A stretch of DNA of 64,000 nt, taken from sequence record OV032902.1; one strand, given 5' to 3'. This document shows, one piece after another, positions 2,485-21,157 of the stretch. A program made the position numbers and the translations under genes. Below the pieces are notes generated by a model that saw nothing but the letters and a program-made list of their open reading frames with translations, had not been told where the DNA came from and did not search any database. How positions within the stretch are numbered: the stretch's first letter is position 1; each line of letters starts with the position of its first letter.

Positions 2485-3353
2485 GTAACAACAAAGGTAT
2501 TGGCGTACAATACAACAACATCAAAAAGACAGGCATTAGCCTAGAGACGCACATCAATCTAGTATATGCGGTACTGGCTTTATTCATCGGTCTTTTCATG
2601 TTCGTTGTTTACGAAAACGTAAAGCTTACTCGTGAGGTTGACGAGCTGACTCAAATGCTAGATAACGCAGAAGGTAATCTAGTTGACTCAGAAGACAATG
2701 CCTTGGCGCTGACTCGTGAATTAACGATGATGACCAAGCATGTTAAGGACTTAGAAGAGAAACTAAATCCTGAACCATTCAAGCCTGAGTTGGGTCTGAC
2801 TGATCTTCAGAATAAGTTGTGTCTTGCTATCACAGCTTTCACTGAAACAAACGGTGAACCTACCTTGGCACGGGAGACCATGTCTTGGGCCATCATAAAC
2901 AGAGCCATTGACCCTCGTGCGGCAGATGGCAAGAGTCGAGCTTACAAAAACAATACTTGTGCAGTAGGTGCGGCTAAGAACCAATACTCTGGTATGGGTC
3001 CATACATCGTAGATATTGAAGATGTAGTATGGGGTAACATTACATCCTTTACTCCTGCCCTGGCCAAAAAGAATGCAGAGGAAATGAAAGCATGGAAAGA
3101 CATCTTGCGCATCTCTTCTGAAATCATTGATGGTAAACTAACCCGAAAGACCACAGCCACTCATTTCATCTCCTTCCGAGGAATGAAAGGCGCCAAGCGT
3201 CCATCGTGGGTAGATTACTTCATGCCTGTAGGTACGACTACTGAATCTGGCTTGCATACTCTTTACCGTGATTATGGTTATGATCGCACAACAGGTGAGA
3301 TAGTTTACTTTACTAAGGCTACTCCATATAACCCTAACAAACATCGTTACTAG
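2481..3353 (+). CDS. Membrane-anchored cell-wall hydrolase, Hydrolase_2/SleB-like lytic transglycosylase
   Basis: N-terminal TM (INLVYAVLALFIGLFMFVVY) and a coiled coil, then CLAITAFTETNGE..AIINR..TCAV..NQYS, matching the SleB pattern CLAxxxYxEARGE..VIxNR..xCxV..QFS with the catalytic Glu. Confidence 0.78.
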   Translation: MSNNKGIGVQYNNIKKTGISLETHINLVYAVLALFIGLFMFVVYENVKLTREVDELTQMLDNAEGNLVDSEDNALALTRELTMMTKHVKDLEEKLNPEPFKPELGLTDLQNKLCLAITAFTETNGEPTLARETMSWAIINRAIDPRAADGKSRAYKNNTCAVGAAKNQYSGMGPYIVDIEDVVWGNITSFTPALAKKNAEEMKAWKDILRISSEIIDGKLTRKTTATHFISFRGMKGAKRPSWVDYFMPVGTTTESGLHTLYRDYGYDRTTGEIVYFTKATPYNPNKHRY

Positions 3354-3361
3354 GAGGTAAC

Positions 3362-3781
3362 ATGAATTTTCTAATGGGCGAATATATTCTAGAGGTTTAC
3401 GTGGTAGCATATTTCTTGTGCTACTTTGCATTCCTTCTTACTAACCTTCCACCAAAAGGAACAATGGGTACAAAACAAATGAAGAGACTTTGGTTCGAAG
3501 GTCAACTAATGCTTATGCTTCTACCTATGTTTGTAGGCGGCATCGCATATGGACTGGCTTTCGGATTCGGTGCACGGGAAGGTTCAGCTAACTATCTGTT
3601 CTTTGTGTTCTCTAGTTGGTTCTTATCTACCATGGTATATAAGACGATACGCAAGAAGTCCACAGAAACGCCAGGTCAGAAGTTCTTCTCAACCGCTGTA
3701 GAAAAGTATCATAGCGTAATAGGTCCGGTGTTGTTTACCTTCTTCTTGTATGGTATCTGGATCTATCATCCTGCGGTTTAA
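3362..3781 (+). CDS. Multi-pass (about 4 TM) membrane protein of unknown function
   Basis: GGAGG RBS; several hydrophobic stretches. Confidence 0.8.
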   Translation: MNFLMGEYILEVYVVAYFLCYFAFLLTNLPPKGTMGTKQMKRLWFEGQLMLMLLPMFVGGIAYGLAFGFGAREGSANYLFFVFSSWFLSTMVYKTIRKKSTETPGQKFFSTAVEKYHSVIGPVLFTFFLYGIWIYHPAV

Positions 3782-3782
3782 A

Positions 3783-3821
3783 TGAATCTGAAAGATATTT
3801 CATCTCTATATAACCTATATG
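3783..3821 (+). promoter_or_regulatory. Early-type phage promoter, copy 2
   Basis: TGAATCTGAAAGATATTTCATCTCTATATAACCTATATG, nearly identical to the copy at 19022. Confidence 0.75.
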
Positions 3822-3858
3822 GATGTGATACAATAAACATCTATACCACTGCTTTTAG

Positions 3859-3893
3859 CCTCCACAGCCTTCGGGTTGTGGAGGTATCTTTTT
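3859..3893 (+). terminator. UUCG-loop hairpin with U-rich tail
   Basis: CCTCCACAGCC-TTCG-GGTTGTGGAGG followed by TATCTTTTT. Confidence 0.7.
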
Positions 3894-3924
3894 CTAACAC
3901 AACTTAAAATTTTGGAGTTTTGCT

Positions 3925-4053
3925 ATGCGTCTTACTAACGGTCAAGTTCTTGTTATGGGTATTCTTTCTCTTGTTCTATTCTTTACAGTAGGTCAAGATA
4001 ACACTGAAGCTTACAACAATCACGTAATGGAAACAACAACTCATCAAGAGTAA
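3925..4053 (+). CDS. 42-aa single-TM peptide (absent from the ORF track)
   Basis: GGAG RBS; MRLTNGQVLVMGILSLVLFFTVGQDNTEAYNNHVMETTTHQE; host-like codons; followed by a hairpin. Confidence 0.7.
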   Translation: MRLTNGQVLVMGILSLVLFFTVGQDNTEAYNNHVMETTTHQE

Positions 4054-4384: not shown

Positions 4385-4425
4385 TCTTTACTATCTTAAT
4401 CTAAATCTAATTCGGAGTATTTCTC

Positions 4426-4764
4426 ATGTTTAAACTATTTACTGATATCAAACAAAAAGTAACTAACTTCTTCAACGGTGCTTACCTTGCACTTAAATCT
4501 GCATTCGCTTCAGAAAACAAAGCTGATGCTGCGATGTCTTATGCTGTTAACGCTAAAGACATGCCACTTGATGCAGCTACTCGTGCTGGTATCAAGTTCG
4601 GTGGTGTTCTTGGCTTCAACGTAACTCACCCACTACAACTATCTGTACTTGGTATTTACTTTGTAGCTGAAGCTTTCTTCGGTGCTGGCCTTGTTGCGGC
4701 ACTATGTGGCGTAGTAATTATTCCTGTAGTTACTGCTACTCTATGTGCAATCTTCCTTGACTAA
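4426..4764 (+). CDS. Membrane protein with MFKLF amphipathic N-terminus (112 aa)
   Basis: GGAG RBS; starts MFKLFTDIKQKVTNFF; hydrophobic C-terminal half. Confidence 0.82.
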   Translation: MFKLFTDIKQKVTNFFNGAYLALKSAFASENKADAAMSYAVNAKDMPLDAATRAGIKFGGVLGFNVTHPLQLSVLGIYFVAEAFFGAGLVAALCGVVIIPVVTATLCAIFLD

Positions 4765-4776
4765 TTCGGAGGTCAT

Positions 4777-5301
4777 ATGTTTAATTGGTTCAAAAATAAA
4801 ATCATGGCTGCCGCTAAGGCAGTCAAGGAGTTTTTCACTGAAGGTAAGTTTCTAGTGAAAGCGCCTAAGGTTATTCGCAATAACGTTTCGCCACTAGGTG
4901 GTTGGAAATGGTCACCTGAGTTAGATGAATATCTGACTCGTATCGAAGACACATACCTGGGCATGAACGAAGGTACTGTTGAGCTTCTAATTCAAGAGTT
5001 GCCTGGCGTGTTCGCAATGAAGTCAATCTCTAACCACCGTGGTATGCGCGTAGTTAAGCAATTCATCATTAATCAGCTAAAGCAGCTGGTAGCTGGTGAT
5101 AAAGAGAAAACGTCTTATCTTAACAAAATGGAACAGTTTATCCCTAACAAGGAAACTGGTCCTATGCCTGAATCACAAAAAGAAATCTCATACGGCATGG
5201 CTCGTGTGATCTGTCTATATTTCAACGAAGTACCTGCTCCTATGTTTTCTAACAATAAGGGGGCTAAGGTATTTAGTCTTCTTAAAGCAATGGAGCAATA
5301 A
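4777..5301 (+). CDS. Hypothetical protein with amphipathic N-terminus (174 aa)
   Basis: GGAGG RBS; starts MFNWFKNKIMAAAKAVKEFF. Confidence 0.82.
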   Translation: MFNWFKNKIMAAAKAVKEFFTEGKFLVKAPKVIRNNVSPLGGWKWSPELDEYLTRIEDTYLGMNEGTVELLIQELPGVFAMKSISNHRGMRVVKQFIINQLKQLVAGDKEKTSYLNKMEQFIPNKETGPMPESQKEISYGMARVICLYFNEVPAPMFSNNKGAKVFSLLKAMEQ

Positions 5302-5303
5302 TT

Positions 5304-5741
5304 ATGTTTAAACTGTTTAAGAAAATCATCAAGTCAGTTGTTGACTTTGTTAAATCTATCTTCTCTAAAGAAGAAAAGAAACAAGAAGTAATTAAAACCA
5401 AGGAAGAAAAACTTGGCGAACTATTTGACAAGAGCGTTCGCGGTAATGCTATTACTGAAAAAGATGTAGAACTAATCACTGCTGATACTCCAGCAGAAGC
5501 TATCTATATCGTAGATCATTTCACTGGTAGCCCAATGTTTCCGCAAGAAGGTCGCGTCATCTACTATTTCTTTGGTCAGTTTTGTGAAAACGAAACAGTT
5601 GACGAAAAACTTCAGCAGGCGATTCTTGATGTCGTTTTGAAGTTTGGTCCAAAGATCATAGAAACAAAAGGTATCTGTATTGGCGCGCGCGCTTCTTTTG
5701 CCGCGATAATTAAACGTTATGAAGAAAACAAGGACAAATAA
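5304..5741 (+). CDS. Hypothetical protein, paralog of 7952..8374
   Basis: Starts MFKLFKKIIKSVVDFVKSIF. SVRGNAITEKDVEL and FCENETVD match SVTGNPIKESDVAL and FAENKTVD. Confidence 0.85.
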   Translation: MFKLFKKIIKSVVDFVKSIFSKEEKKQEVIKTKEEKLGELFDKSVRGNAITEKDVELITADTPAEAIYIVDHFTGSPMFPQEGRVIYYFFGQFCENETVDEKLQQAILDVVLKFGPKIIETKGICIGARASFAAIIKRYEENKDK

Positions 5742-6607
5742 TGAATACTAACAAAATCACAAACGAAATTAACAACATCGTAATTTTTACGAGAAAGAAC
5801 GATGCTTTCATTTCACGCAATGCTATGGCCGATGCGACAGGCATTAATGGCACTATTGCTTCCATGGCCGTTGGTGCCGGTAGTGTACTTGGTGCACTTC
5901 TTCCGGTAGCTGTCGTTGACTTTTTCATCGACATGGCAAAGGAAACTGGCGTCGATGGCGCTGCTGTAGTGACAACTGCTTTATCTGAAATATGCGAATC
6001 AATCGGTCTCGAATATAAAGATAGCTTAGTTGCCTTGGTACTAGGCGGCGCTATTGCTGGCATCGCTGGTGCTGGCTTGGGTTGGTTAGTCAAACAACTT
6101 ATTGATTGGGGCGTTAAACGCATTCAATCAAAGAAGATAGAAGCCAAGTTCGAGATGTTTAAAAACGCAAATGCCGGTTTACAATCTACGGCCATTATGA
6201 TTGCAGAGCGCGAAGAGTTAACCGATTACGACGTATTTTGTCTACTGGAACAATTGGAAAACTTCATGTCTATTTTTGGTGTGAGCTTTGATGACTTAAA
6301 TAAACTAGTTAAGCGAGTTAACGAAATAAAGTTTGTTGAGTGTCAAGAGGAAATCATCGAAGAAAGCATTGATCTTCACGCTAACCTGCTCAACGAAGCA
6401 CTAGACGTAGAACTAAAGTCGATCCCAGACGAATACGTTTCTTCTGATCTAGATGAGACATATTTGCTGTTGTCTGAAATGGGCATCTCCTTGGATAACT
6501 GGCTTCATCTACTAGATGTAGAAAATCTATGTAAGAAACCACAAAATGAAATGAATAATTTCATGCTTAAATATAAACAGGAAATAAAGAAAAATGCAAT
6601 TGCGTAA
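5741..6607 (+). CDS. Glycine-zipper-like membrane protein, paralog of 8442..9299
   Basis: GSVLGALLP, GGAIAGIAGAGLG and TDY..F..FG..FDD..KFV are shared with the 8442 protein. Confidence 0.85.
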   Translation: MNTNKITNEINNIVIFTRKNDAFISRNAMADATGINGTIASMAVGAGSVLGALLPVAVVDFFIDMAKETGVDGAAVVTTALSEICESIGLEYKDSLVALVLGGAIAGIAGAGLGWLVKQLIDWGVKRIQSKKIEAKFEMFKNANAGLQSTAIMIAEREELTDYDVFCLLEQLENFMSIFGVSFDDLNKLVKRVNEIKFVECQEEIIEESIDLHANLLNEALDVELKSIPDEYVSSDLDETYLLLSEMGISLDNWLHLLDVENLCKKPQNEMNNFMLKYKQEIKKNAIA

Positions 6608-6878
6608 TCCGTTTCTAAATATCATTGCAGATCTATTGGTTGGCGATGAATTAGAAAAGCAACGACTCCATGCTAAAAGGTCGATTAAGGCCATTGTTTC
6701 TCTCTGTAAGTCAAATAGGTTCCGATTGACCGATGACCTACGAGAAGCCATCGAGGGAGTTTTTGATATAAATCCAACAGCGACACTGTCCTTTGAAGTC
6801 CACATGCGAAACCAAAATGGCGATGATATGAAAACAGCCATCGTTGACAGTATAGCTATTTTTGTTAAAGATGAGTAA
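6594..6878 (+). CDS. Hypothetical protein (94 aa), probable distant paralog of 9293..9631
   Basis: Overlaps the upstream stop; shares NP..EKQR..E.(V/L)F.(I/L).P with the 9293 protein. Confidence 0.7.
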   Translation: MQLRNPFLNIIADLLVGDELEKQRLHAKRSIKAIVSLCKSNRFRLTDDLREAIEGVFDINPTATLSFEVHMRNQNGDDMKTAIVDSIAIFVKDE

Positions 6879-6933
6879 ACCCCAATGGGTGTTTACTAAG
6901 CATCCATGAGAATTTATTTAAAGAGAGTAACTT

Positions 6934-7503
6934 ATGTTTAAACTATTCAAACGCATCAAAGATGCAATCGTAAACTTCGTATCTTCTATCTTCGGTAAGA
7001 AAGAAGAAGCTAAACAAGAAACTGTTCAAGAAGAAACTGTATCTCCTGAAGTACAGCAGTCTATTGAAGAGTTCGAGTCTAAAGTAGATCTTCCTGAGAA
7101 AAGCAACAACGGTCTTGATTACGTAGCTAAAGAGTTCCGTCATTACCTAGGTCGTCATGCTACTCATGATATCCGTAACATCGAAGACATCCAACGTGTA
7201 TGGTTTGCACGTGGTGTTAAGATCGAACAGGTTAAGAAGCGCATGCTTGGTCTACGTAACGTGTTCAATATGAAAGTAATCGAGTCATTGACTACAGGTG
7301 CTGAAGAGTGTCTAGGTCGTGACGGTATCGATACTATCGAGAAGCACGCAATGTCTATCGAGACTGGTTACCGCAAAGCTCTTAAGAACCTACTTAAGAA
7401 CTCTGTGAAACACATGCCATCTTACTTTGCTAAGAAGCATAAGAACCAGATCGCTAAGATCATCAACGACATCACGGCTACTAGCTATGTTCCGGCTAAT
7501 TAA
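6934..7503 (+). CDS. Hypothetical protein with MFKLFK N-terminus (189 aa)
   Basis: Starts MFKLFKRIKDAIVNFVSSIFGKKEE; strongly host-like codons. Confidence 0.85.
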   Translation: MFKLFKRIKDAIVNFVSSIFGKKEEAKQETVQEETVSPEVQQSIEEFESKVDLPEKSNNGLDYVAKEFRHYLGRHATHDIRNIEDIQRVWFARGVKIEQVKKRMLGLRNVFNMKVIESLTTGAEECLGRDGIDTIEKHAMSIETGYRKALKNLLKNSVKHMPSYFAKKHKNQIAKIINDITATSYVPAN

Positions 7504-7942
7504 GAAATGGGTGCGTAAATTCAAGTTATGGCTGTGCGGTCCATCTGTGCCAGACAAACTTGATGCACCTCAGGTGAAACATCCTGACCCAGTCGAAACA
7601 GATGTTCTCGTTGTAGACAATCAATGTGCTCTTGATATCATAATGGTCATCAAGGCAGCTGGTGCGTTTATTACTGAAGTTAAGCATGTTGGCTTTTCTA
7701 AAGTATCACGCGGCTTGCGACTAAAGCTCATAGCGCTGCATAAAATGCTACTGCAAATAGACAGTGTAGATAGCGTAACGCGTCGATCGTCGACACGTCT
7801 GCATGAACTAATCGATGAGGTCATCGCATATGCGAAAGAGGAAACTACTCCGATTAAACGCGAAGAGTTCTTCCGCTTTGCAGAGATGATGAAACTCAAT
7901 ATCCAAACTATCTTACGTAATCGCAACATCCCAATGGGATAA
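7487..7942 (+). CDS. Hypothetical protein with MFRLIKK N-terminus (151 aa)
   Basis: The in-frame ATG at 7487 gives MFRLIKKWVRKFKLW, matching the neighbouring leaders; preferred over 7427. Confidence 0.72.
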   Translation: MFRLIKKWVRKFKLWLCGPSVPDKLDAPQVKHPDPVETDVLVVDNQCALDIIMVIKAAGAFITEVKHVGFSKVSRGLRLKLIALHKMLLQIDSVDSVTRRSSTRLHELIDEVIAYAKEETTPIKREEFFRFAEMMKLNIQTILRNRNIPMG

Positions 7943-7951
7943 GGAAACATA

Positions 7952-8374
7952 ATGTTTAAACTATTTGGTAAAATTAAAGACGCTGTTGTTGGCTTCTTTA
8001 AATCTGTTGTTGAATTTGTCTTTGGTAAGAAAGAAGATAAATCTGAAAAAGCTGAGCGTACTCTAGAGGACGTCTTCAAAGAAAGTGTAACTGGTAATCC
8101 AATTAAAGAGTCAGACGTGGCTCTTTTCCAAGTGGATACACTAGAAACAGCCAAGAAAATCGTTTCGATGTTCGTTTCTATTACTGCACCTAAAGACGGA
8201 GAAGGTTGTGTTTGTTTGACCGAGCCTCTATTTGCAGAAAACAAAACAGTAGACGGCTGTCTACGTATCATCTTCCTTGCAGTAATTCTTAAGTACCACG
8301 ATGAATTGATTAAGGATGAGAAAACCAAACTTATCACTACTTATGTGATGCGTCGCTATAAAGGTGAAGAGTAA
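7952..8374 (+). CDS. Hypothetical protein, paralog of 5304..5741
   Basis: AAGGAA RBS; starts MFKLFGKIKDAVVGFFKSVV. Confidence 0.85.
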   Translation: MFKLFGKIKDAVVGFFKSVVEFVFGKKEDKSEKAERTLEDVFKESVTGNPIKESDVALFQVDTLETAKKIVSMFVSITAPKDGEGCVCLTEPLFAENKTVDGCLRIIFLAVILKYHDELIKDEKTKLITTYVMRRYKGEE

Positions 8375-8441: not shown

Positions 8442-9299
8442 ATGAACACTGAAATCAACAAAGTTTCTCTTGCTATTCAAGAAATTGTAAAGTACACAAA
8501 CGTTAACCAATCCATCGTTGACCTTGGTATGAAGGAAGACGCTAAAGGACTAGGTGAATTTGGCGACGCAGCAGCCATGGGCATCGGTGGTCTTTTGGGT
8601 GCTCTGCTGCCTAGTTTCGTTTATGACTACTTTATGGAAATGGGTCAACAGATAGGCGCAGCAGCAATCACGGAAGCTATCTCTAACTTTTGTGAGGAAT
8701 TAGGTATCGATTATCTAGATGGCCTTTTTACAATTGTTATTGGCAGTGCATTGTCAGGCGTACTTGGCATGGTCGCGGGCTTTCTAATCAAACGAGGTAT
8801 TGAGTGGTTAGTTAAGCGCCGTCAGAAAAAGCGCAACGAGAAACTATGGGCCCATTATGCGGACTCGATTGACTCCCTGCATAAACAAGCTACTAGTATC
8901 TTACTGGCTGAAGAGATTACCGATTACTCTAGTTTTAAACTTATGACTGATCTAGAGTTCTTCTTGGAATTATTCGGAGCCAAGTTTGACGATATGCATC
9001 GCTTTGCTAAGAAAGTACACGCGGCCAAATTTGTTAAAGGTCAGGATGAGTTATTAGAAAGCGGTCTTGAAAAACATGCCGGTCTTCGTGAAGCGTTAGT
9101 TACTACGGAACTCAAACTAGTTCCTGATCATCTCGCACCAGAGGACTTAGAGGACGCATATAGCCTGATGGCGGATATGGGTTTTGGCACACCATTAGAT
9201 TATTTAAAATATGGCGACGTTGATCGTCTGGCAGAAGAGCCAGTAGAAGAATTAACTCGCATCATGAAGAGATTAAAAGAGGAAGATTTAACATGGTAG
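8442..9299 (+). CDS. Glycine-zipper-like membrane protein, paralog of 5741..6607
   Basis: GIGGLLGALLP and GSALSGVLGMVAG; collinear similarity over ~285 aa. Confidence 0.85.
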   Translation: MNTEINKVSLAIQEIVKYTNVNQSIVDLGMKEDAKGLGEFGDAAAMGIGGLLGALLPSFVYDYFMEMGQQIGAAAITEAISNFCEELGIDYLDGLFTIVIGSALSGVLGMVAGFLIKRGIEWLVKRRQKKRNEKLWAHYADSIDSLHKQATSILLAEEITDYSSFKLMTDLEFFLELFGAKFDDMHRFAKKVHAAKFVKGQDELLESGLEKHAGLREALVTTELKLVPDHLAPEDLEDAYSLMADMGFGTPLDYLKYGDVDRLAEEPVEELTRIMKRLKEEDLTW

Positions 9300-9631
9300 C
9301 ATTATTAGCACTTGGCAGTAACCCAGTTGGATGGGGTCTACTTGGAGCCCTAGCAGTGGTAGAAGGAGTTCGCCAGGGTAAGAATATCTATGATGACCAC
9401 AAGGAAAAGCAACGTCAAGAAAAATTCAATTCTTGGCTTTCTTTCCTTGAAGAAAAACAAAAAGTCGGTGAAATGGTACTGAAATGGCCAGACCGCAAAA
9501 ACCTGGAACTATTGTTTGGATTAGAACCTGATCTAAATTTCGAGTATGAACTAAAGCTTGGTCACGAGCATACTGGAAACTGGAGCAAGGCTCTAAAGTG
9601 GGTATTTAAGAAGTACCTGAAGGACGACTAA
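9293..9631 (+). CDS. Small protein with N-terminal hydrophobic segment (NPVGW)
   Basis: GAGGAAG RBS; MVALLALGSNPVGWGLLGALAVV. Confidence 0.8.
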   Translation: MVALLALGSNPVGWGLLGALAVVEGVRQGKNIYDDHKEKQRQEKFNSWLSFLEEKQKVGEMVLKWPDRKNLELLFGLEPDLNFEYELKLGHEHTGNWSKALKWVFKKYLKDD

Positions 9632-9637
9632 ATCCTT

Positions 9638-9662
9638 AAAGCTCATTCTCCGAGTGGGCTTT
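9638..9662 (+). terminator. Hairpin after the paralog cluster
   Basis: AAAGCTCATTC-TCC-GAGTGGGCTTT. Confidence 0.55.
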
Positions 9663-9713
9663 GTGGACTATGTCCATAACCTAACTTTAATCTATATACA
9701 AGGAATATTTCAA

Positions 9714-9815
9714 ATGGAAAATTTTGACCTAGTTGACTTCTGTGAAAACAATGCGCCACAATTAGATGTGGACCTACCTAGCGTTGAAGAGCTAATCGCT
9801 GAATTTGACAGTTAA
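9714..9815 (+). CDS. 33-aa acidic peptide (absent from the ORF track)
   Basis: AAGGAA RBS; MENFDLVDFCENNAPQLDVDLPSVEELIAEFDS. Confidence 0.62.
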   Translation: MENFDLVDFCENNAPQLDVDLPSVEELIAEFDS

Positions 9816-9817
9816 AT

Positions 9818-9856
9818 TGAATTTGAAAAGATTTACACTTCTATATAACTGATATG
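9818..9856 (+). promoter_or_regulatory. Early-type phage promoter, copy 3
   Basis: TGAATTTGAAAAGATTTACACTTCTATATAACTGATATG. Confidence 0.7.
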
Positions 9857-9931
9857 CATAGGATGAATTAATCATCCATTTAAACCAAACCCCTGGCAAT
9901 AATGCCCCAATCCTAAATAAGGAATACTATT

Positions 9932-10696
9932 ATGAAAACTCGTCTAACTTTCGCTATCGCTGCTGTTCTTGCTTCTACTTCTGCTTTCGCTGTAGACTTC
10001 TCAACTACTCACACTACTGGTACTACAACTACTTCGGTTGACATCAACCAACAAGTAACTGGTAAAGTGAATGGTCTAGAATTCAACTACTCGCAAAACC
10101 GTGGTGCAGCAGCAGGTGGCGTGAACGGCAATAACTGTGTTGGCGCTGTTTGTGATGGCACTGGTAATGATACTCTATCTGTAGGTATCTCTATCGACGC
10201 TACTCAAACAATCACTAAGCTAGACCAACTAACTACCGGCCTGTCAGTAACTACTGCTGAAAACTGTGACGTAACTGTTGCTATCGGCGGTATCTCTAAC
10301 AGCCAAGGTGTTCGTACTTCACACACTATCGGTGAAACTGAAACAGTTAACAACAACAAAACTTGGATCACTTCTGGTTCAATCGAAGTTGTTACTCAAA
10401 CTGACGCAGGTTACACTGGTGGTCACTGGAGCCCATCTAAGCTAGGTAACGACTTCACTGTATCTATCGGTGGTCAAACTGTAAGCTCTGAAGGTGACGC
10501 AGTAAACGTTATGGCACTATCAACTGCACTACTTGGTGATCTAACTCAAGTAACAGTTGGCGGTCAAGATCTTGCACATGCAGACACTAACGCAATGTCT
10601 GTTAAGATCGAGTCTAGCAAAATCAAAGTTATCGATACTTCTGTATCTACAACTGAAACAGAATCTTCTTCTACTACTTGGTACGAAAACAACTAA
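9932..10696 (+). CDS. Secreted Thr/Ser/Gly-rich beta protein with Sec signal peptide
   Basis: MKTRLTFAIAAVLASTSAFA (A-x-A cleavage site); alternating polar/hydrophobic strands; three Cys. Confidence 0.85.
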   Translation: MKTRLTFAIAAVLASTSAFAVDFSTTHTTGTTTTSVDINQQVTGKVNGLEFNYSQNRGAAAGGVNGNNCVGAVCDGTGNDTLSVGISIDATQTITKLDQLTTGLSVTTAENCDVTVAIGGISNSQGVRTSHTIGETETVNNNKTWITSGSIEVVTQTDAGYTGGHWSPSKLGNDFTVSIGGQTVSSEGDAVNVMALSTALLGDLTQVTVGGQDLAHADTNAMSVKIESSKIKVIDTSVSTTETESSSTTWYENN

Positions 10697-10799
10697 GTAT
10701 TAGATTAAGATAAGTAAATACGTGTAAGCTGACGGAGGTACCTTAGGGTGCCTCCTGAAGTTGCACTTAATCCAATTTTTATTTTTAAGGAATTTTGTC

Positions 10800-11471
10800 A
10801 TGAAGGAAAAGATTGTCGCAGGTCTTTTGATTGCATTGGGTTCATTCTCGTTTAACACTGAAGCTTCTACTTGTGAGACAGGCGGATGTGGCGATAGTAA
10901 CTCTAACCTAAGCGGTTCACAAAACCAATCACAATACAACACGCTACAGCAATCGCCGACAATGGCGCTCAACTCAAGTCAGTCGAATACTGTTCTAAAT
11001 GCCAGTCATGCTACTTCGGGTTCTATCTCGCATTCAGCAGATGGCGGTATTAGCTTCAGTGGTTCGTGTCCTACAAACACCCTAGTCGTCAATGGCGGCT
11101 ACGGAGAGAACGATTCAGAATCTTTCCCGACTAACTATCGCTCTGAGTCTAACAATGCTTACGTTAACGTAGGTGTCGTTATTCCATGGGGTCAGGCAGT
11201 CGATGATTGTAATGAAGGCGAGGCTCTCAAAATCCGTACAGCTAAGTTCGCTTACACTAAGCTACAGATTTCAACTTGTTTGGTATTCATGCAGCAAGGT
11301 ATCTCATTAGATGCTGTTGCTAAGATGAGTCCTGAGTTTGCAATCTGTCCTAAGGTAGCAATGCAAGCTGAGCAAAACATGCATGGACGTATTGGTCGTC
11401 AAGCTGTAGAGCAATACAAAAAGAACATGCAGGCACAAGGAATCAATCCTTACAAAACGTTTGCTAAGTAA
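10800..11471 (+). CDS. Secreted or outer-membrane protein with signal peptide, Q/N/S-rich N-region, beta-hairpin and Cys-containing helical tail
   Basis: ATG at 10800 after AAGGAA; MKEKIVAGLLIALGSFSFNTEA; strands NTLVVNGGY and NAYVNVGVVIPWG. Confidence 0.8.
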   Translation: MKEKIVAGLLIALGSFSFNTEASTCETGGCGDSNSNLSGSQNQSQYNTLQQSPTMALNSSQSNTVLNASHATSGSISHSADGGISFSGSCPTNTLVVNGGYGENDSESFPTNYRSESNNAYVNVGVVIPWGQAVDDCNEGEALKIRTAKFAYTKLQISTCLVFMQQGISLDAVAKMSPEFAICPKVAMQAEQNMHGRIGRQAVEQYKKNMQAQGINPYKTFAK

Positions 11472-11478
11472 TAAACTC

Positions 11479-11500
11479 GCAGTCTCTTACGAGAGGCTGC
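11479..11500 (+). terminator. UNCG-loop hairpin
   Basis: GCAGTCTCT-TACG-AGAGGCTGC. Confidence 0.6.
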
Positions 11501-11529
11501 TATGATTATTATTTTGTTATGGAGGCATT

Positions 11530-11607
11530 ATGCTAAAATATGTTATTTGGTTACCGATGTCTTTCATGACGTCATTCACTATTACTTCAATCCTAATAGG
11601 AGCTTAA
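11530..11607 (+). CDS. 25-aa hydrophobic micropeptide (absent from the ORF track)
   Basis: GGAGG RBS 5 nt upstream; MLKYVIWLPMSFMTSFTITSILIGA; stop lies 2 nt before the next ATG. Confidence 0.55.
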   Translation: MLKYVIWLPMSFMTSFTITSILIGA

Positions 11608-11609
11608 TT

Positions 11610-12524
11610 ATGTCAGTGTTCAAACAATCAGGAAAGTTGGCTGGTTTTTATGATGCTTTACCTCGCATCAACATGGCATGGACAAATGAAGAACATGCTG
11701 TTGTTATTGCGTGCTCAACAATTGTTAGGGCATTCAATAAGTTTGCCGGTATGGAGATTCCTCAATCAAGCGTACAGTTCGCGGCACCTAGTCTTCCAAT
11801 CACCGAGCATGTTTTCCATGAAGCAATTGCAGCATTTAAAGAAGGCCGCTATCCTGAAACCATGTTCTTCTACTTGACCTTCATCAAGTGGCTAAACCAA
11901 GAAAACAAAATTGCCACGCATGAATTCAAAGAAGTATTCTCTGTTGAGTTCGCTGAACGCATGCTTAGTATTTTCAAGAACCACTTGCCGGTTGATTTCG
12001 GTAAGCGCCTAGATAGTTCTCTTGAATTGATCTTCATGTATCCTGATTACTTTGACGTTATGTTCGTCGAGGATGGTTTCTGTCTCAATGTCAGAAGAGA
12101 GCTAGCGGATAAGGTAAGGGCTAGAGGCATTCCTTGTCGTCCTATATTAGACGTAGCCGAAGAAAACATCGAAGAGCTATTCTCGGTGGATATGTTTTCT
12201 TTAGCTGCACTGGCTAAGAAAAAGTGGGAGGAAGAACTCAGAACTCTTCCAAGCGAAGAAAGAGAAAAGCGCGCATGCACGTTTAACGAATTGATGTCCC
12301 CGAAAGGAAGGATGGACATCATTACCTGGATCAAGAAAAAGATCGAGGAAAGAACTAAAGAGGTTGCCGAGTACGAAGCAGGCGTTACTGCGGCAGATAA
12401 TCTTCAATACAATTCTCATGCTTACCTCAAGAAAGAACTCTTGGCGTTAATGGAGAAATACCCTGAGGTTGAAAACCTCGAATACACACGTGACGGAAAA
12501 GTCCGTATCGTGCTAGACATCTAA
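11610..12524 (+). CDS. Hypothetical protein (304 aa)
   Basis: ATG at 11610 after AGGAG; preferred over 11502. Confidence 0.8.
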   Translation: MSVFKQSGKLAGFYDALPRINMAWTNEEHAVVIACSTIVRAFNKFAGMEIPQSSVQFAAPSLPITEHVFHEAIAAFKEGRYPETMFFYLTFIKWLNQENKIATHEFKEVFSVEFAERMLSIFKNHLPVDFGKRLDSSLELIFMYPDYFDVMFVEDGFCLNVRRELADKVRARGIPCRPILDVAEENIEELFSVDMFSLAALAKKKWEEELRTLPSEEREKRACTFNELMSPKGRMDIITWIKKKIEERTKEVAEYEAGVTAADNLQYNSHAYLKKELLALMEKYPEVENLEYTRDGKVRIVLDI

Positions 12525-12551
12525 TCAACATCTAACATAGAGAGATATAAC

Positions 12552-13466
12552 ATGCAAACTATTAAAGAACCTACTACTGAAGGCATCCTGGCTTACCGTC
12601 GCGTCAATGTCAAAGGCCAAATCGGCATCATGGGTAACCTGATCGAAGCCGTTGAGTTTCTAACCAAACATGACTATACGTCATTATCTGGCAGTACTCG
12701 TCCAGTTACGTCTGTCGTTTGCCAGCGCATCGAGTACGTATTGGTCTCCCTCAGTGACGGCACCTCGGCTGTAAACTCCATCTTCCTTGACAAGGACAAA
12801 AACGTTACTCCGTTAGGTCAATACTTCTTTGGTATTTACTTTAACCCAACGATGTCGCTTGATCGAGTTAAGAATGTTTACGAGTGGTTGAAACAACATG
12901 AAGGCATGTTTGCCAGCATGGAATCTTCAGAGATTGCAGCCACGGTAGTATCTATGTTCCTAGAGACTCCTGATTCTGCACCAGAAGCCGAACTAGCAAA
13001 ATCAGAAGCAGTCGATCCAGTTAAGGCATACTTCGATATGTTCATCGACGATACGTCTTTGATTACCCCAACTCATGAAAACGTTGTTCGCTTTGATGTG
13101 GTACAGAGTCGCGGCGTTATCGCTGAGGTTTATGTTCCTGGTGACCGCAATATCAATCTCAAGAACTTCCAGGCGGACGAAGTAACTTTGTGTCATCGCG
13201 GTGGCTCGCCAAAGATTACTTTGGTTTACTGTTTCTCTAAATGCGAGAAAGAGCAGAAGCTATTGTACTTGGCACATGAAAAGTTCTTTAATGTATTGAA
13301 GAAGTCGTACGCAGAACAAGTGATGCTTTGGACACGCGCTAACGTGGCAATCAAAGTAGATGAGTTTGTGAAGCAGTTCCCTATCTTTAAGAACAACTTC
13401 CGCTTCCTTGGAGATAAGACGTCTAACGAACGCTTTATCCAAATCTGGAAGTTCTTCCAAAACTAG
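12552..13466 (+). CDS. Hypothetical protein (304 aa)
   Basis: Long ORF with genome-typical codons; no motif recognised. Confidence 0.8.
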   Translation: MQTIKEPTTEGILAYRRVNVKGQIGIMGNLIEAVEFLTKHDYTSLSGSTRPVTSVVCQRIEYVLVSLSDGTSAVNSIFLDKDKNVTPLGQYFFGIYFNPTMSLDRVKNVYEWLKQHEGMFASMESSEIAATVVSMFLETPDSAPEAELAKSEAVDPVKAYFDMFIDDTSLITPTHENVVRFDVVQSRGVIAEVYVPGDRNINLKNFQADEVTLCHRGGSPKITLVYCFSKCEKEQKLLYLAHEKFFNVLKKSYAEQVMLWTRANVAIKVDEFVKQFPIFKNNFRFLGDKTSNERFIQIWKFFQN

Positions 13467-19021: not shown

Positions 19022-19060
19022 TGAATCTGAAAAGATATTCATCTCTATATTACCTATATG
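19022..19060 (+). promoter_or_regulatory. Early-type phage promoter, copy 4
   Basis: TGAATCTGAAAAGATATTCATCTCTATATTACCTATATG; TATATTAC at 19046-19053. Confidence 0.75.
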
Positions 19061-19126: not shown

Positions 19127-21157
19127 ATGAACACTCGTAAAACTGTAATCGCAACTCTTATCGCTCTAGCAACTACTCCAGCTCTAGCAGCAGGCCACAT
19201 CGGTAACCAGTCTGGTAACGACAATGACGTTGATATTGTTGTAGGTGACATTGAAACAGTAATGGGTAACATCTGTAACCAATCTGGTTCTAACAACGAT
19301 TGTGATGTTGACATCGAAAACGTAAACGGTGATCTAGTGATCGCTGATGGCGCTAACGTAACTATCAATCAATCTGGCGGTGGTGCTGATAACCGTACCG
19401 GTGTACTTCAAACTAAGTACGACTGGGGTACTCGCGTTTCAACTGTAGATCACCGTGAAGACGGCACCAAAGCAGTTGAGTCAGTTAACTACTACAAAGA
19501 CGGTAAGGTTGTTGTTGCTACATGGTATGAAACCGCAGATGGTGAGCGCACTAACTACGAGCAAAACCTAGTTGCAAGCAATGCTACAAGTCTTGACCAT
19601 GCTCTACTTAAAGGTAAGGTTGATTCTAACAAAGCTGCGTCTGAGCGCGGCGATGCTGCACTGCAAGCACAGATTGATGCATGGGTTGATACTGATACAG
19701 TTCGCTCTGATGCAGAAATCAAAGCTGTTGCTGATGTAGGTGACAAAATCCTAGCTAATGAAATCGACGCACTACGTGACGAGCAAGTAGCTAAGAACAA
19801 TGCGCAAGACACAGCAATCAAAACTCAGTGGGATCTGATCCAAGATGTTGAAGCTAAGAACGAAGAGCAAGACGTTGCCCTAGCAGGTAAAGTTGACCGT
19901 GAAGAGTTCGAAGCATCTCAGGCAGCACAAGACGCTGAACTAGATCGTCTAACTAACGATGTAGATGCAGCACAGTCTACAGCTGACCAAGCATTCGCTG
20001 ACGCACAACTAGCTAACCAAAAAGCTGACGCTAACACTACAGCAATCGCAGATCAACAAGAGCAGCTAAACCAAACAGCTGATCGTGTTACTTCAGTAGA
20101 AAACAATGTTGCAGATCTAGACAATCGTGTAACAGGCGTTGAAGCTGAACTAGGTAACAAAGTTAACTACGATGAGTTCCTAGCTGACCAGCAACGTCAA
20201 GACCAAGCTATCGCTGATGTTAATAACAAAGTAGATGGCGTGCAAGATCAAGTAAACAACCTAGACGGTCGTGTAAACGATGTTGAGCAAACTGCAAACG
20301 CAGCTATGGATCAAGCAATCTCTGCACAGCTAACTGGTGAGTACGCACAAGAACTTGCATACGGTGCACTAGAAGGTGTTCAACAAAATGCTGAGACAAT
20401 CAACCAAGTAGCGGCTGATTCTCTAGAGCGTGACAACAACCTACTAGAAGCAATCGACGAAACTCACGAGCAGTCTCTAGAGCGTGACAACATGATCGTC
20501 GAGTACGTTGTTGCTGATCAAGAGCGTCAAGATGCAGTTATCGCAGAAAACGATAAAGCATCTAAAGAGCGTGATGCTGAACTAGCTAAAGCAGTAACTA
20601 CTGTAGATGCTAAAGCTGAAGCTAACAAAGCGGAAATCGCTAAAGTTGAAACTGAGTCTAAAGACCGCGATGCAGCTATCGTAGCTAACCAAGCTAAAGT
20701 AGATGCTAAGCAAGACAAAGTGTTCAACGATTACCGTGTAGTTCAAGAGCAAGTAGATGCGGGTCAATTCGCAGCTATCGATTCTCTAGAAGCTGAGCTA
20801 TATGCACAAGCTGGTGTTAACGCACGTCAAGACAAGTCTATCGCTGCACTAAGCAACCGTATGGGCAAAGTTGAAAAGCGTGTATCTGCACTAGAAGGTC
20901 GTATGGACAAAGCTGAAGCTGGTATCGCAAACGCTATCGCTATGCAAGGTCTAACTGACAACATGCTATCTGTAGCAGTTGGTGGTTACGAAGGTGCATC
21001 TGCAATCGCGTTCGGTTCTGTAATCCCTGTTGGTCAAATCATGGCTGAGAAAGGTTACGCTACATTACCTGGTCTTAAAATTAAGACATCAGGCTCTGTA
21101 TCGATTCAGACAGGCGATACAGCAGCATCTATTGGTGTAGGTTTCGATTTTAAATAA
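19127..21157 (+). CDS. YadA-like trimeric autotransporter adhesin
   Basis: Signal peptide MNTRKTVIATLIALATTPALA; long coiled-coil stalk with polar core motifs (RQD, ERD); C-terminal anchor GIANAIAM..SVAVGGYEGASAIAFG..SIGVGFDFK. Confidence 0.85.
   Translation: MNTRKTVIATLIALATTPALAAGHIGNQSGNDNDVDIVVGDIETVMGNICNQSGSNNDCDVDIENVNGDLVIADGANVTINQSGGGADNRTGVLQTKYDWGTRVSTVDHREDGTKAVESVNYYKDGKVVVATWYETADGERTNYEQNLVASNATSLDHALLKGKVDSNKAASERGDAALQAQIDAWVDTDTVRSDAEIKAVADVGDKILANEIDALRDEQVAKNNAQDTAIKTQWDLIQDVEAKNEEQDVALAGKVDREEFEASQAAQDAELDRLTNDVDAAQSTADQAFADAQLANQKADANTTAIADQQEQLNQTADRVTSVENNVADLDNRVTGVEAELGNKVNYDEFLADQQRQDQAIADVNNKVDGVQDQVNNLDGRVNDVEQTANAAMDQAISAQLTGEYAQELAYGALEGVQQNAETINQVAADSLERDNNLLEAIDETHEQSLERDNMIVEYVVADQERQDAVIAENDKASKERDAELAKAVTTVDAKAEANKAEIAKVETESKDRDAAIVANQAKVDAKQDKVFNDYRVVQEQVDAGQFAAIDSLEAELYAQAGVNARQDKSIAALSNRMGKVEKRVSALEGRMDKAEAGIANAIAMQGLTDNMLSVAVGGYEGASAIAFGSVIPVGQIMAEKGYATLPGLKIKTSGSVSIQTGDTAASIGVGFDFK

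Follow-up and report, generated by a model that had tools for sequence, protein, structure and literature searches.

An exported two-gene cassette of unrelated lytic marine phages with covarying cysteines and a possible role in the cell envelope of the infected host

This report concerns two adjacent genes for exported proteins, here called gene A and gene B, of the jumbo phage Vibrio phage vB_VpaM_sm033 (OV032902.1, 320 kb). The analysis covered a stretch of 64,000 nucleotides, referred to as the window, of which bases 9000-13000 are 100% identical to positions 265253-269253 of the record. All seven genes matched under this interval are labelled 'hypothetical protein' in the record. Every long open reading frame (ORF) of the window lies on the + strand, as do the two genes. 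The ORF at 9932-10696 encodes protein A (254 residues), a secreted Thr/Ser/Gly/Val-rich β protein, and the ORF at 10800-11471 encodes its secreted partner, protein B (223 residues). The longest ORF for gene B begins at TTG 10761; we use ATG 10800, which is backed by a ribosome-binding site (RBS) and is the start annotated in GenBank.

A and B both start with a basic residue, after which come a hydrophobic core and a signal peptidase I site of the A-x-A type. The signal peptide comprises residues 1-20 of A, with cleavage between STSAFA and VD, and residues 1-22 of B, with cleavage between FNTEA and ST. Judged by these signals, both proteins are exported by Sec and cut by signal peptidase I. A sequence check found no hydrophobic segment beyond the signal peptide in either protein. 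There is no lipobox in B: the position ahead of its first Cys is taken by T, E, A or D among its relatives, and a signal-peptidase-I site of the A-x-A type precedes this Cys. Neither protein ends in an aromatic β-signal of the BAM type, the last residues being ...TWYENN in A and ...KTFAK in B, and A, with a total of only 4.4% F, Y and W, shows no aromatic girdles. The composition of A is dominated by T (16.9%), S (10.6%), G (10.6%) and V (9.8%), and its ends are Thr-rich. An earlier note on this DNA had described two genes, Sec signal peptides on both products, a first protein of T/S/G/V/N-type β-like sequence with Thr-rich ends and a second protein with a Q/N/S-rich region, a GVVIPWG strand and a helical tail with three Cys residues. 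Both ORFs exist, both signals are typical cleavable signal-peptidase-I signals, the composition of A agrees, and all of these features of B are present, with Cys 137, 160 and 183 located in or just before the helical tail.

Neither protein is like anything described, each lacking a relative in the family libraries and among solved structures. Searches of A and B against Pfam, PHROGs, NCBIfam and PADLOC yielded nothing meaningful, and sequence and profile searches of the PDB yielded no match. Leads from the ESM Atlas were set aside, as no sequence search backs them; they comprised virus and cyanobacterial clusters that scored high with B and a weak match of A to HfaD.

The two genes recur together in other phages. 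By tblastn, seven GenBank Vibrio phages (82-320 kb) carry A and B side by side in one common order: sm033 (320 kb), C-ZP2022 and vB_pir03 (~287 kb), BONAISHI (289 kb), the T5-like VCPH (120 kb, Demerecviridae), and Vpas_PP24 and vB_VhaS-a (~82 kb). A word search of 5.8 billion proteins added 5 and 8 clusters of assembly-derived relatives, and a B profile search of 1.84 billion representatives returned 15 clusters only. On the Logan/JGI contigs L005, L006, L013 and L014, B is immediately preceded by an A homologue, and on the contig carrying P0016 a 250-residue gene is called directly upstream of B. On Logan contig L016, the A homologue upstream of B (3233-3972) is split over two reading frames, as a frameshifted pseudogene or through an assembly error. 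Overall, A immediately precedes B at 15 of 16 loci. These represent five or more unrelated lineages of lytic phages of Vibrio and Pseudoalteromonas, and the genes flanking the pair differ from lineage to lineage. The isolated carrier phages have been described as lytic (PMC6207643, PMC7765460). Pairwise identities among A proteins and among B proteins are strongly correlated across 14 pairs (Mantel r 0.88; 0/5000 permutations as high). These comparisons of loci show that the genes move as a pair among unrelated lytic phages of marine Gammaproteobacteria. The co-conservation expected in the earlier note, for which it had proposed a synteny search, is thus borne out by gene order, by the correlated identities and by covarying cysteines (see below). 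The resemblance to an adjacent gene pair of marine cyanophages suggested in the note was not confirmed, the sequence relatives lying only in Vibrio/Pseudoalteromonas phages or in assembly contigs with phage-like called genes.

A deeper branch of B proteins (291-317 residues) is found in a 136-kb ENA assembly contig and in Pseudoalteromonas phage J2-1 (Ounavirinae), where B is preceded by a secreted T/S/N-rich protein of 194-199 residues. These short proteins, P0029 and P0037, are A-like in gene position, signal peptide and composition. Profile comparison with A gives weak support (probability 24-54%, E 1e-4 to 8e-4), and the BFVD search returned a fold match to a 194-residue protein. The Cys residues of P0029 (71, 76 and 112) are placed as in A, and P0037, from J2-1, has no Cys. 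Homology of P0029 and P0037 to A is thus weakly indicated, mainly by position, signal peptide, composition, the Cys placing in P0029 and the BFVD fold match. The distant B relatives also carry an extra C-terminal domain of ~100 residues with two Cys of its own (L008 8598-8918; L017 4032-4352; also P0022 and P0027). By eye, its β-α-β-β-α-β-like pattern is similar to SPOR; a SPOR identity is not supported by Pfam, which gave no SPOR match on the whole proteins or on the 107-residue extensions.

Pattern-based scans, which are less sensitive than hidden Markov model searches, found no relatives in IMG/VR, in 185,579 species genomes or in JGI metagenome contigs. Given these results and the nature of the carriers, the cassette appears on present data to be rare and is known only from phages and phage-like contigs.

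The strongest indication of physical coupling between A and B comes from their cysteines. In all 14 pairs compared, three Cys in A and an N-terminal CxxxxC in B are either both present or both absent. Ten pairs combine an A that has exactly three Cys, two of them in a CxxxxC, with a B that has the N-terminal CxxxxC; in the other 4 (BONAISHI, L013, L014 and J2-1), A has no Cys and B lacks the N-terminal pair while keeping its four core Cys. In a maximum-likelihood tree of 20 B proteins, a branch with 100/99 support parts the long-B clade from the rest, and both Cys states occur on each side of it, which requires a minimum of two independent changes; on the best tree, four are needed. The joint loss or gain of Cys in two proteins, the oxidizing compartment to which they are exported and the odd number of Cys in A together suggest direct contact between A and B, which could involve intermolecular disulfides or a common site.

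The structure of A was modelled with AlphaFold2 from an alignment of 11 sequences (mean predicted local distance difference test, pLDDT, 74.4; predicted template modelling score 0.55). The model has four strands of ~36 residues each (23-58, 82-118, 121-157 and 220-253). The loop 59-80, predicted at low confidence, holds a CxxxxC (C69, C74), the third Cys is at 112, and residues 158-219 form a conserved apical insert. A BFVD model of a viral protein with 47% identity superposes on the A model with a template modelling (TM) score of 0.75. The most conserved residues of A (QNRG, GND, TQTD, SKPGND, SEG, GQD and AD.N) cluster at the loop end of the model, and a second conserved patch, CDVTV.IGG.SNSQG, is placed in a turn at the opposite end. 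Both faces of the predicted sheet are mostly polar. A height-by-height table of the sheet revealed no hydrophobic belt at any height, and the lower half is Thr/Ser-rich on all strands. Without such a belt, A is best read as a water-exposed rod that would need partners to bury its sheet, rather than as a membrane pore.

The best PDB matches of the A model in Foldseek were pore-state C8/C9, perforin, pleurotolysin B and aerolysin (E 4e-5 to 1e-3, TM 0.13-0.27). VIA-align returned the same pore-state entries together with an aegerolysin-type pore, RCD-1 and gasdermin pores (Z 5-7.5). These matches span only the hairpins, and neither the sequence nor a confident global fold places a MACPF, aerolysin or gasdermin domain in A. 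At the level of the model, the matches reflect a common architecture, that is, two very long hairpins, and not kinship.

The AlphaFold model of B, built from 18 sequences, is of lower confidence (pLDDT 58.6). Residues 14-87 are disordered, a long β-hairpin (94-127) is modelled at pLDDT ~50-59, and a helical domain (132-212) reaches 70-83. The N-terminal CxxxxC (C25, C30) is followed by a Q/N/S-rich arm (~31-87) with a conserved QSPTMAL motif (51-57). Across the alignment of 18 relatives, P53 within this motif, C90, C137, C160 and C183 are invariant; C90 and C137 flank the hairpin, and C160 and C183 lie within helices. Within the hairpin, column hydrophobicity alternates over only ~7-11 residues beside the Cys, and the tip of 18 residues is polar and conserved. 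The B fold has no match to CsgG, secretins, TolC or any other channel (best Foldseek E 0.4; best VIA Z 4.5).

The expected placing of the unit between an early promoter and a hairpin agrees with what is present upstream of A and after B. A promoter-like motif (9811..9879, + strand; repeat family D1/D4) precedes gene A, with its core TCTATATAAC at 9840-9849. This motif of 55-69 nucleotides, with the core TCTATATWAC, has four copies in the window (2118, 3805, 9840 and 19044), against 0.31 expected from shuffled sequence. All four copies lie ahead of + strand genes. The core resembles TATATTAC, the early-promoter motif predicted for phiKZ and 201phi2-1 (PMC7058600). Early promoters of jumbo phages that encode RNA polymerases have been characterized as AT-rich conserved motifs of ~10 nucleotides (PMC7598289). 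The 5' leader of gene A also contains the 12-nucleotide inverted repeat GGCAATAATGCC (9895..9906, + strand), 25 nucleotides ahead of the ATG and found only once in the window. It occurs once each before the A genes of PP24, VhaS-a and JGI contig L006, with a spacing of 24-25 nucleotides to the ATG, and C-ZP2022 and pir03 carry the variant GGCAATAATGTC. In these otherwise unrelated phages, the repeat is located at 3099-3110 of L002, 4965-4976 of L006 and 4114-4125 of L012. Because GGCAATAATGCC moves with the cassette, it may be a control element acting at the RNA level or through a host factor.

Two hairpins follow. The first, overlooked in the earlier note, is a GC-rich stem-loop of 9 base pairs between A and B (10734..10755, + strand), with a T-rich stretch 25-30 nucleotides later (z = -2.7 for the intergenic fold); it is a candidate attenuating terminator. 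A GC-rich stem-loop is present in the 68-116-nucleotide A-B spacer of all 10 loci folded, several of them being classical stem-plus-T-run terminators, and in VCPH and BONAISHI the spacer also has a separate promoter motif for B. The second hairpin (11479..11500, + strand; 9 base pairs, then a T-rich tail; z = -4.4) is terminator-like and closes the unit. Its pairing is preserved by compensatory changes in sm033, C-ZP2022 and pir03, with an identical TACG loop and flanks. The codon bias of A is the strongest among 23 window genes measured, with an effective number of codons (ENC) of 28.5, compared with 42.0 for B and 47.2 for the pooled background; ACT accounts for 84% of its Thr codons, ATC for 100% of Ile and CAA for 100% of Gln. 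Taken together, the codon bias, the A-B hairpin and the separate B promoters indicate a set-up for a much larger output of A, which is probably made in excess over B.

Among the neighbouring genes, the one at 19127-21157 (676 residues) has the codon bias nearest to that of A (ENC 33.0). It carries the promoter motif found ahead of A (copy at 19044) and an 87%-identical RBS/start region of 31 nucleotides, and its C terminus gives a sub-threshold match to YadA_anchor (E 4.8e-4). On contig L005, a 584-residue relative of this gene lies directly upstream of the A-B pair. An endolysin gene is located 2-4 kb downstream of the pair at three jumbo-phage loci (the window, L005 and L006). A role of A and B as a spanin pair or otherwise in lysis was considered and rejected: there is no lipobox, no transmembrane anchor follows the signal peptides, the promoter motif is of the early type, and the synteny with endolysin is missing in other phages. 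Elsewhere in the window (4414-8005), several small neighbouring genes share the start ATGTTTAAACT(A/G)TT..., which gives MFKLF-type N termini (repeat families D2 and D5).

We conclude that the cassette is a genuine, exported unit whose two members are functionally coupled. Beyond this, we tentatively favor, as a possibility that we would not yet call probable, that A forms an abundant self-assembling structure in the envelope, that B serves as its sub-stoichiometric nucleator, cap or anchor, and that the two are switched on early together with the YadA-like fibre to remodel the cell surface. A and B, as a mobile cassette found only in phages, would cooperate in the envelope of the infected host cell. 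A would be a rod-like, four-stranded β-meander of ~110 Å with conserved acidic and amide-rich loops at one end. As such a rod is unlikely to be stable alone, it would self-assemble into an oligomeric β-structure, and this oligomer (a tube, prism or fibre) may form in the periplasm or at the outer membrane. The presumably less abundant B would bind directly to A, with its N-terminal CxxxxC and Q/N/S-rich arm as the probable contact sites and disulfide bonds as a possible means, and would nucleate, cap or anchor the A assembly; the extra C-terminal domain of the distant B relatives is a possible anchor. Since the sm033 cassette appears to be switched on early along with the gene for a YadA-like outer-membrane fibre, it would most likely serve to reshape the host cell surface during infection, for instance by excluding other phages or masking receptors. 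A more specific version, in which A builds, in the envelope of infected marine bacteria, a previously unknown, disulfide-coupled nanostructure (a long oligomeric β-tube or fibre) that is seeded or anchored by B and is passed among lytic phages to shield the infected cell against other phages or to alter its permeability or adhesion, strikes us as quite improbable.

Several points weigh against this proposal. We only infer the self-assembly of A and its binding to B. The fold matches of A are at the level of architecture, with TM ~0.2, a root mean square deviation of 10-16 Å and Z below the level that the tool treats as informative. The alignments are shallow (11 sequences for A, 18 for B), so AlphaFold may over-extend the long strands, and the B model is poor over residues 14-127. 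The covariation of Cys could stem from a common redox requirement instead of a direct bond. The 'early' timing is read from the promoter motif. Finally, one locus, the 1.5-kb contig L015, has B without A upstream.

Other readings give A and B different tasks. It is conceivable, if somewhat unlikely, that both are soluble periplasmic proteins that build no structure, with A binding an envelope component or an ion through its GND/GQD/TQTD loops and B modulating it. The clustering of the most conserved D/N/Q/E/G-rich loops of A at one end of the model and the mainly polar character of both sheet faces would fit such a role, and the extra C-terminal domain of distant B relatives hints at periplasmic binding. 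Yet a sheet made of four strands, each 36 residues long, lacks a core and would hardly be stable as a monomer, and the very high expression suggested by codon bias and the odd number of Cys better suit a structural polymer. A could instead be a β-barrel pore-former that punches holes in the outer membrane from the periplasmic side, or in the membrane of another cell after release, with B as its chaperone, pilot or inhibitor. The top structural matches of A are indeed pore-state protomers (C8/C9, perforin, pleurotolysin B, an aegerolysin partner, RCD-1 and gasdermins). Stems of the aerolysin type consist of long Ser/Thr-rich strands, and those of A are long and Ser/Thr-rich as well; the endolysin gene downstream of the pair at the three jumbo-phage loci also points in this direction. 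However, the A sheet has no hydrophobic belt, the TM scores are low (0.13-0.27), and the sequence of A gives no signal for MACPF, aerolysin or gasdermin. A promoter of the early type fits poorly with lysis, and the pair is distant from any lysis gene in VCPH, PP24 and J2-1. We therefore regard a pore-forming A as rather improbable.

The earlier note had proposed that B oligomerizes through its amphipathic hairpin into an outer-membrane channel on the principle of CsgG and exports A, which would polymerize as a surface fibril. B does have two amphipathic strands, with hydrophobic columns at 95/97/99 and 120-130 between the invariant C90 and C137, and its monomer model shows a hairpin protruding from a helical domain. 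A, in turn, is β-rich, presumably abundant in view of its codon bias, and co-conserved with B. Of the amphipathic strands described in the note, the alternation of hydrophobic residues was seen, while the hairpin is modelled at low confidence and its 18-residue tip is polar. A CsgG-like role for B was not supported: besides having no lipobox, B matches no Pfam or NCBIfam family, no PDB sequence and no channel fold, including those of CsgG, secretins and TolC. Furthermore, a channel requires many copies, yet B is geared to lower expression than A. A curli-like fibril role for A fared no better, as its model has four strands of ~36 residues rather than a solenoid, it is not predicted to be an amyloid repeat protein, and it has no match to Curlin_rpt or any other Pfam entry. 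The models suggest that the architecture indicative of a large oligomeric β-barrel belongs to A and not to B, and we consider the proposed model of a B channel with an A fibril very unlikely. A role of A and B as virion components or assembly factors, not directed at the host, could draw on the strong codon bias of A, which is like that of structural genes. Given the cleavable Sec signals on both proteins, the early-type promoter motif and the unrelated virion architectures of the carriers (jumbo myoviruses, a T5-like phage, 82-kb phages and a FelixO1-like phage), we assign it next to no likelihood.

If A and B act as an assembly in the host envelope, this would be of interest in several respects. 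Lytic phages are increasingly seen to export proteins to the host envelope, few of which have a known structure or role. A self-assembling β-tube formed by A would be a new protein architecture. The carriers infect the aquaculture and coral pathogens V. harveyi, V. parahaemolyticus and V. coralliilyticus, and a cassette that excludes competing phages or masks receptors would bear directly on the design of phage cocktails for Vibrio control. The covariation of Cys offers a cheap and direct entry point for experiments.

Among known systems, curli (CsgA with the CsgG lipoprotein channel, type VIII) resemble the cassette in that a Sec-exported, β-rich and presumably abundant subunit, A, stands next to a smaller exported partner, B, with a Q/N-rich segment and an amphipathic hairpin. 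Unlike in curli, B has no lipobox and matches CsgG neither in sequence nor in fold, A lacks curlin repeats and is not predicted as a β-solenoid, and the cassette consists of two genes only, without equivalents of CsgE/F/B. With β-pore-forming protomers (MACPF/C9/perforin, pleurotolysin B, gasdermins and aerolysin), A shares the predicted two very long hairpins, the shape of subunits in giant barrels. It differs from them in lacking a sequence signal, a globular MACPF or gasdermin body and an amphipathic membrane belt, in the low similarity of the models (TM ~0.2) and in being exported by Sec from a Gram-negative host. In comparison to trimeric autotransporter adhesins of the YadA type, A would supply four strands per chain, as does the anchor of these adhesins, and the neighbouring gene at 19127-21157, with its YadA_anchor-like end, has the promoter motif, the RBS context and the codon bias in common with A. 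By contrast, A itself has no YadA_anchor match and no coiled-coil stalk, and its strands are three times the length of a membrane span.

A parallel in biological setting is offered by phage-encoded envelope proteins that change the surface of the host cell, such as lambda Lom, T5 Llp and the β-barrel outer-membrane proteins of huge phages. Like A and B, these are phage products that reach the envelope by export, and many are made at high levels; receptor masking and superinfection exclusion are the roles proposed for them. According to a recent preprint, outer-membrane proteins are common among huge phages and strongly expressed by them, and masking of receptors in the manner of Lom is discussed there (preprint 10.64898/2026.10.24.761521). 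A and B differ in being neither lipoproteins nor membrane β-barrels with a C-terminal aromatic signal, and in forming a two-protein unit, apparently coupled through cysteines, without a family assignment. The cassette would thus represent a two-protein variant, not based on an outer-membrane protein, of the theme of phage-exported envelope proteins.

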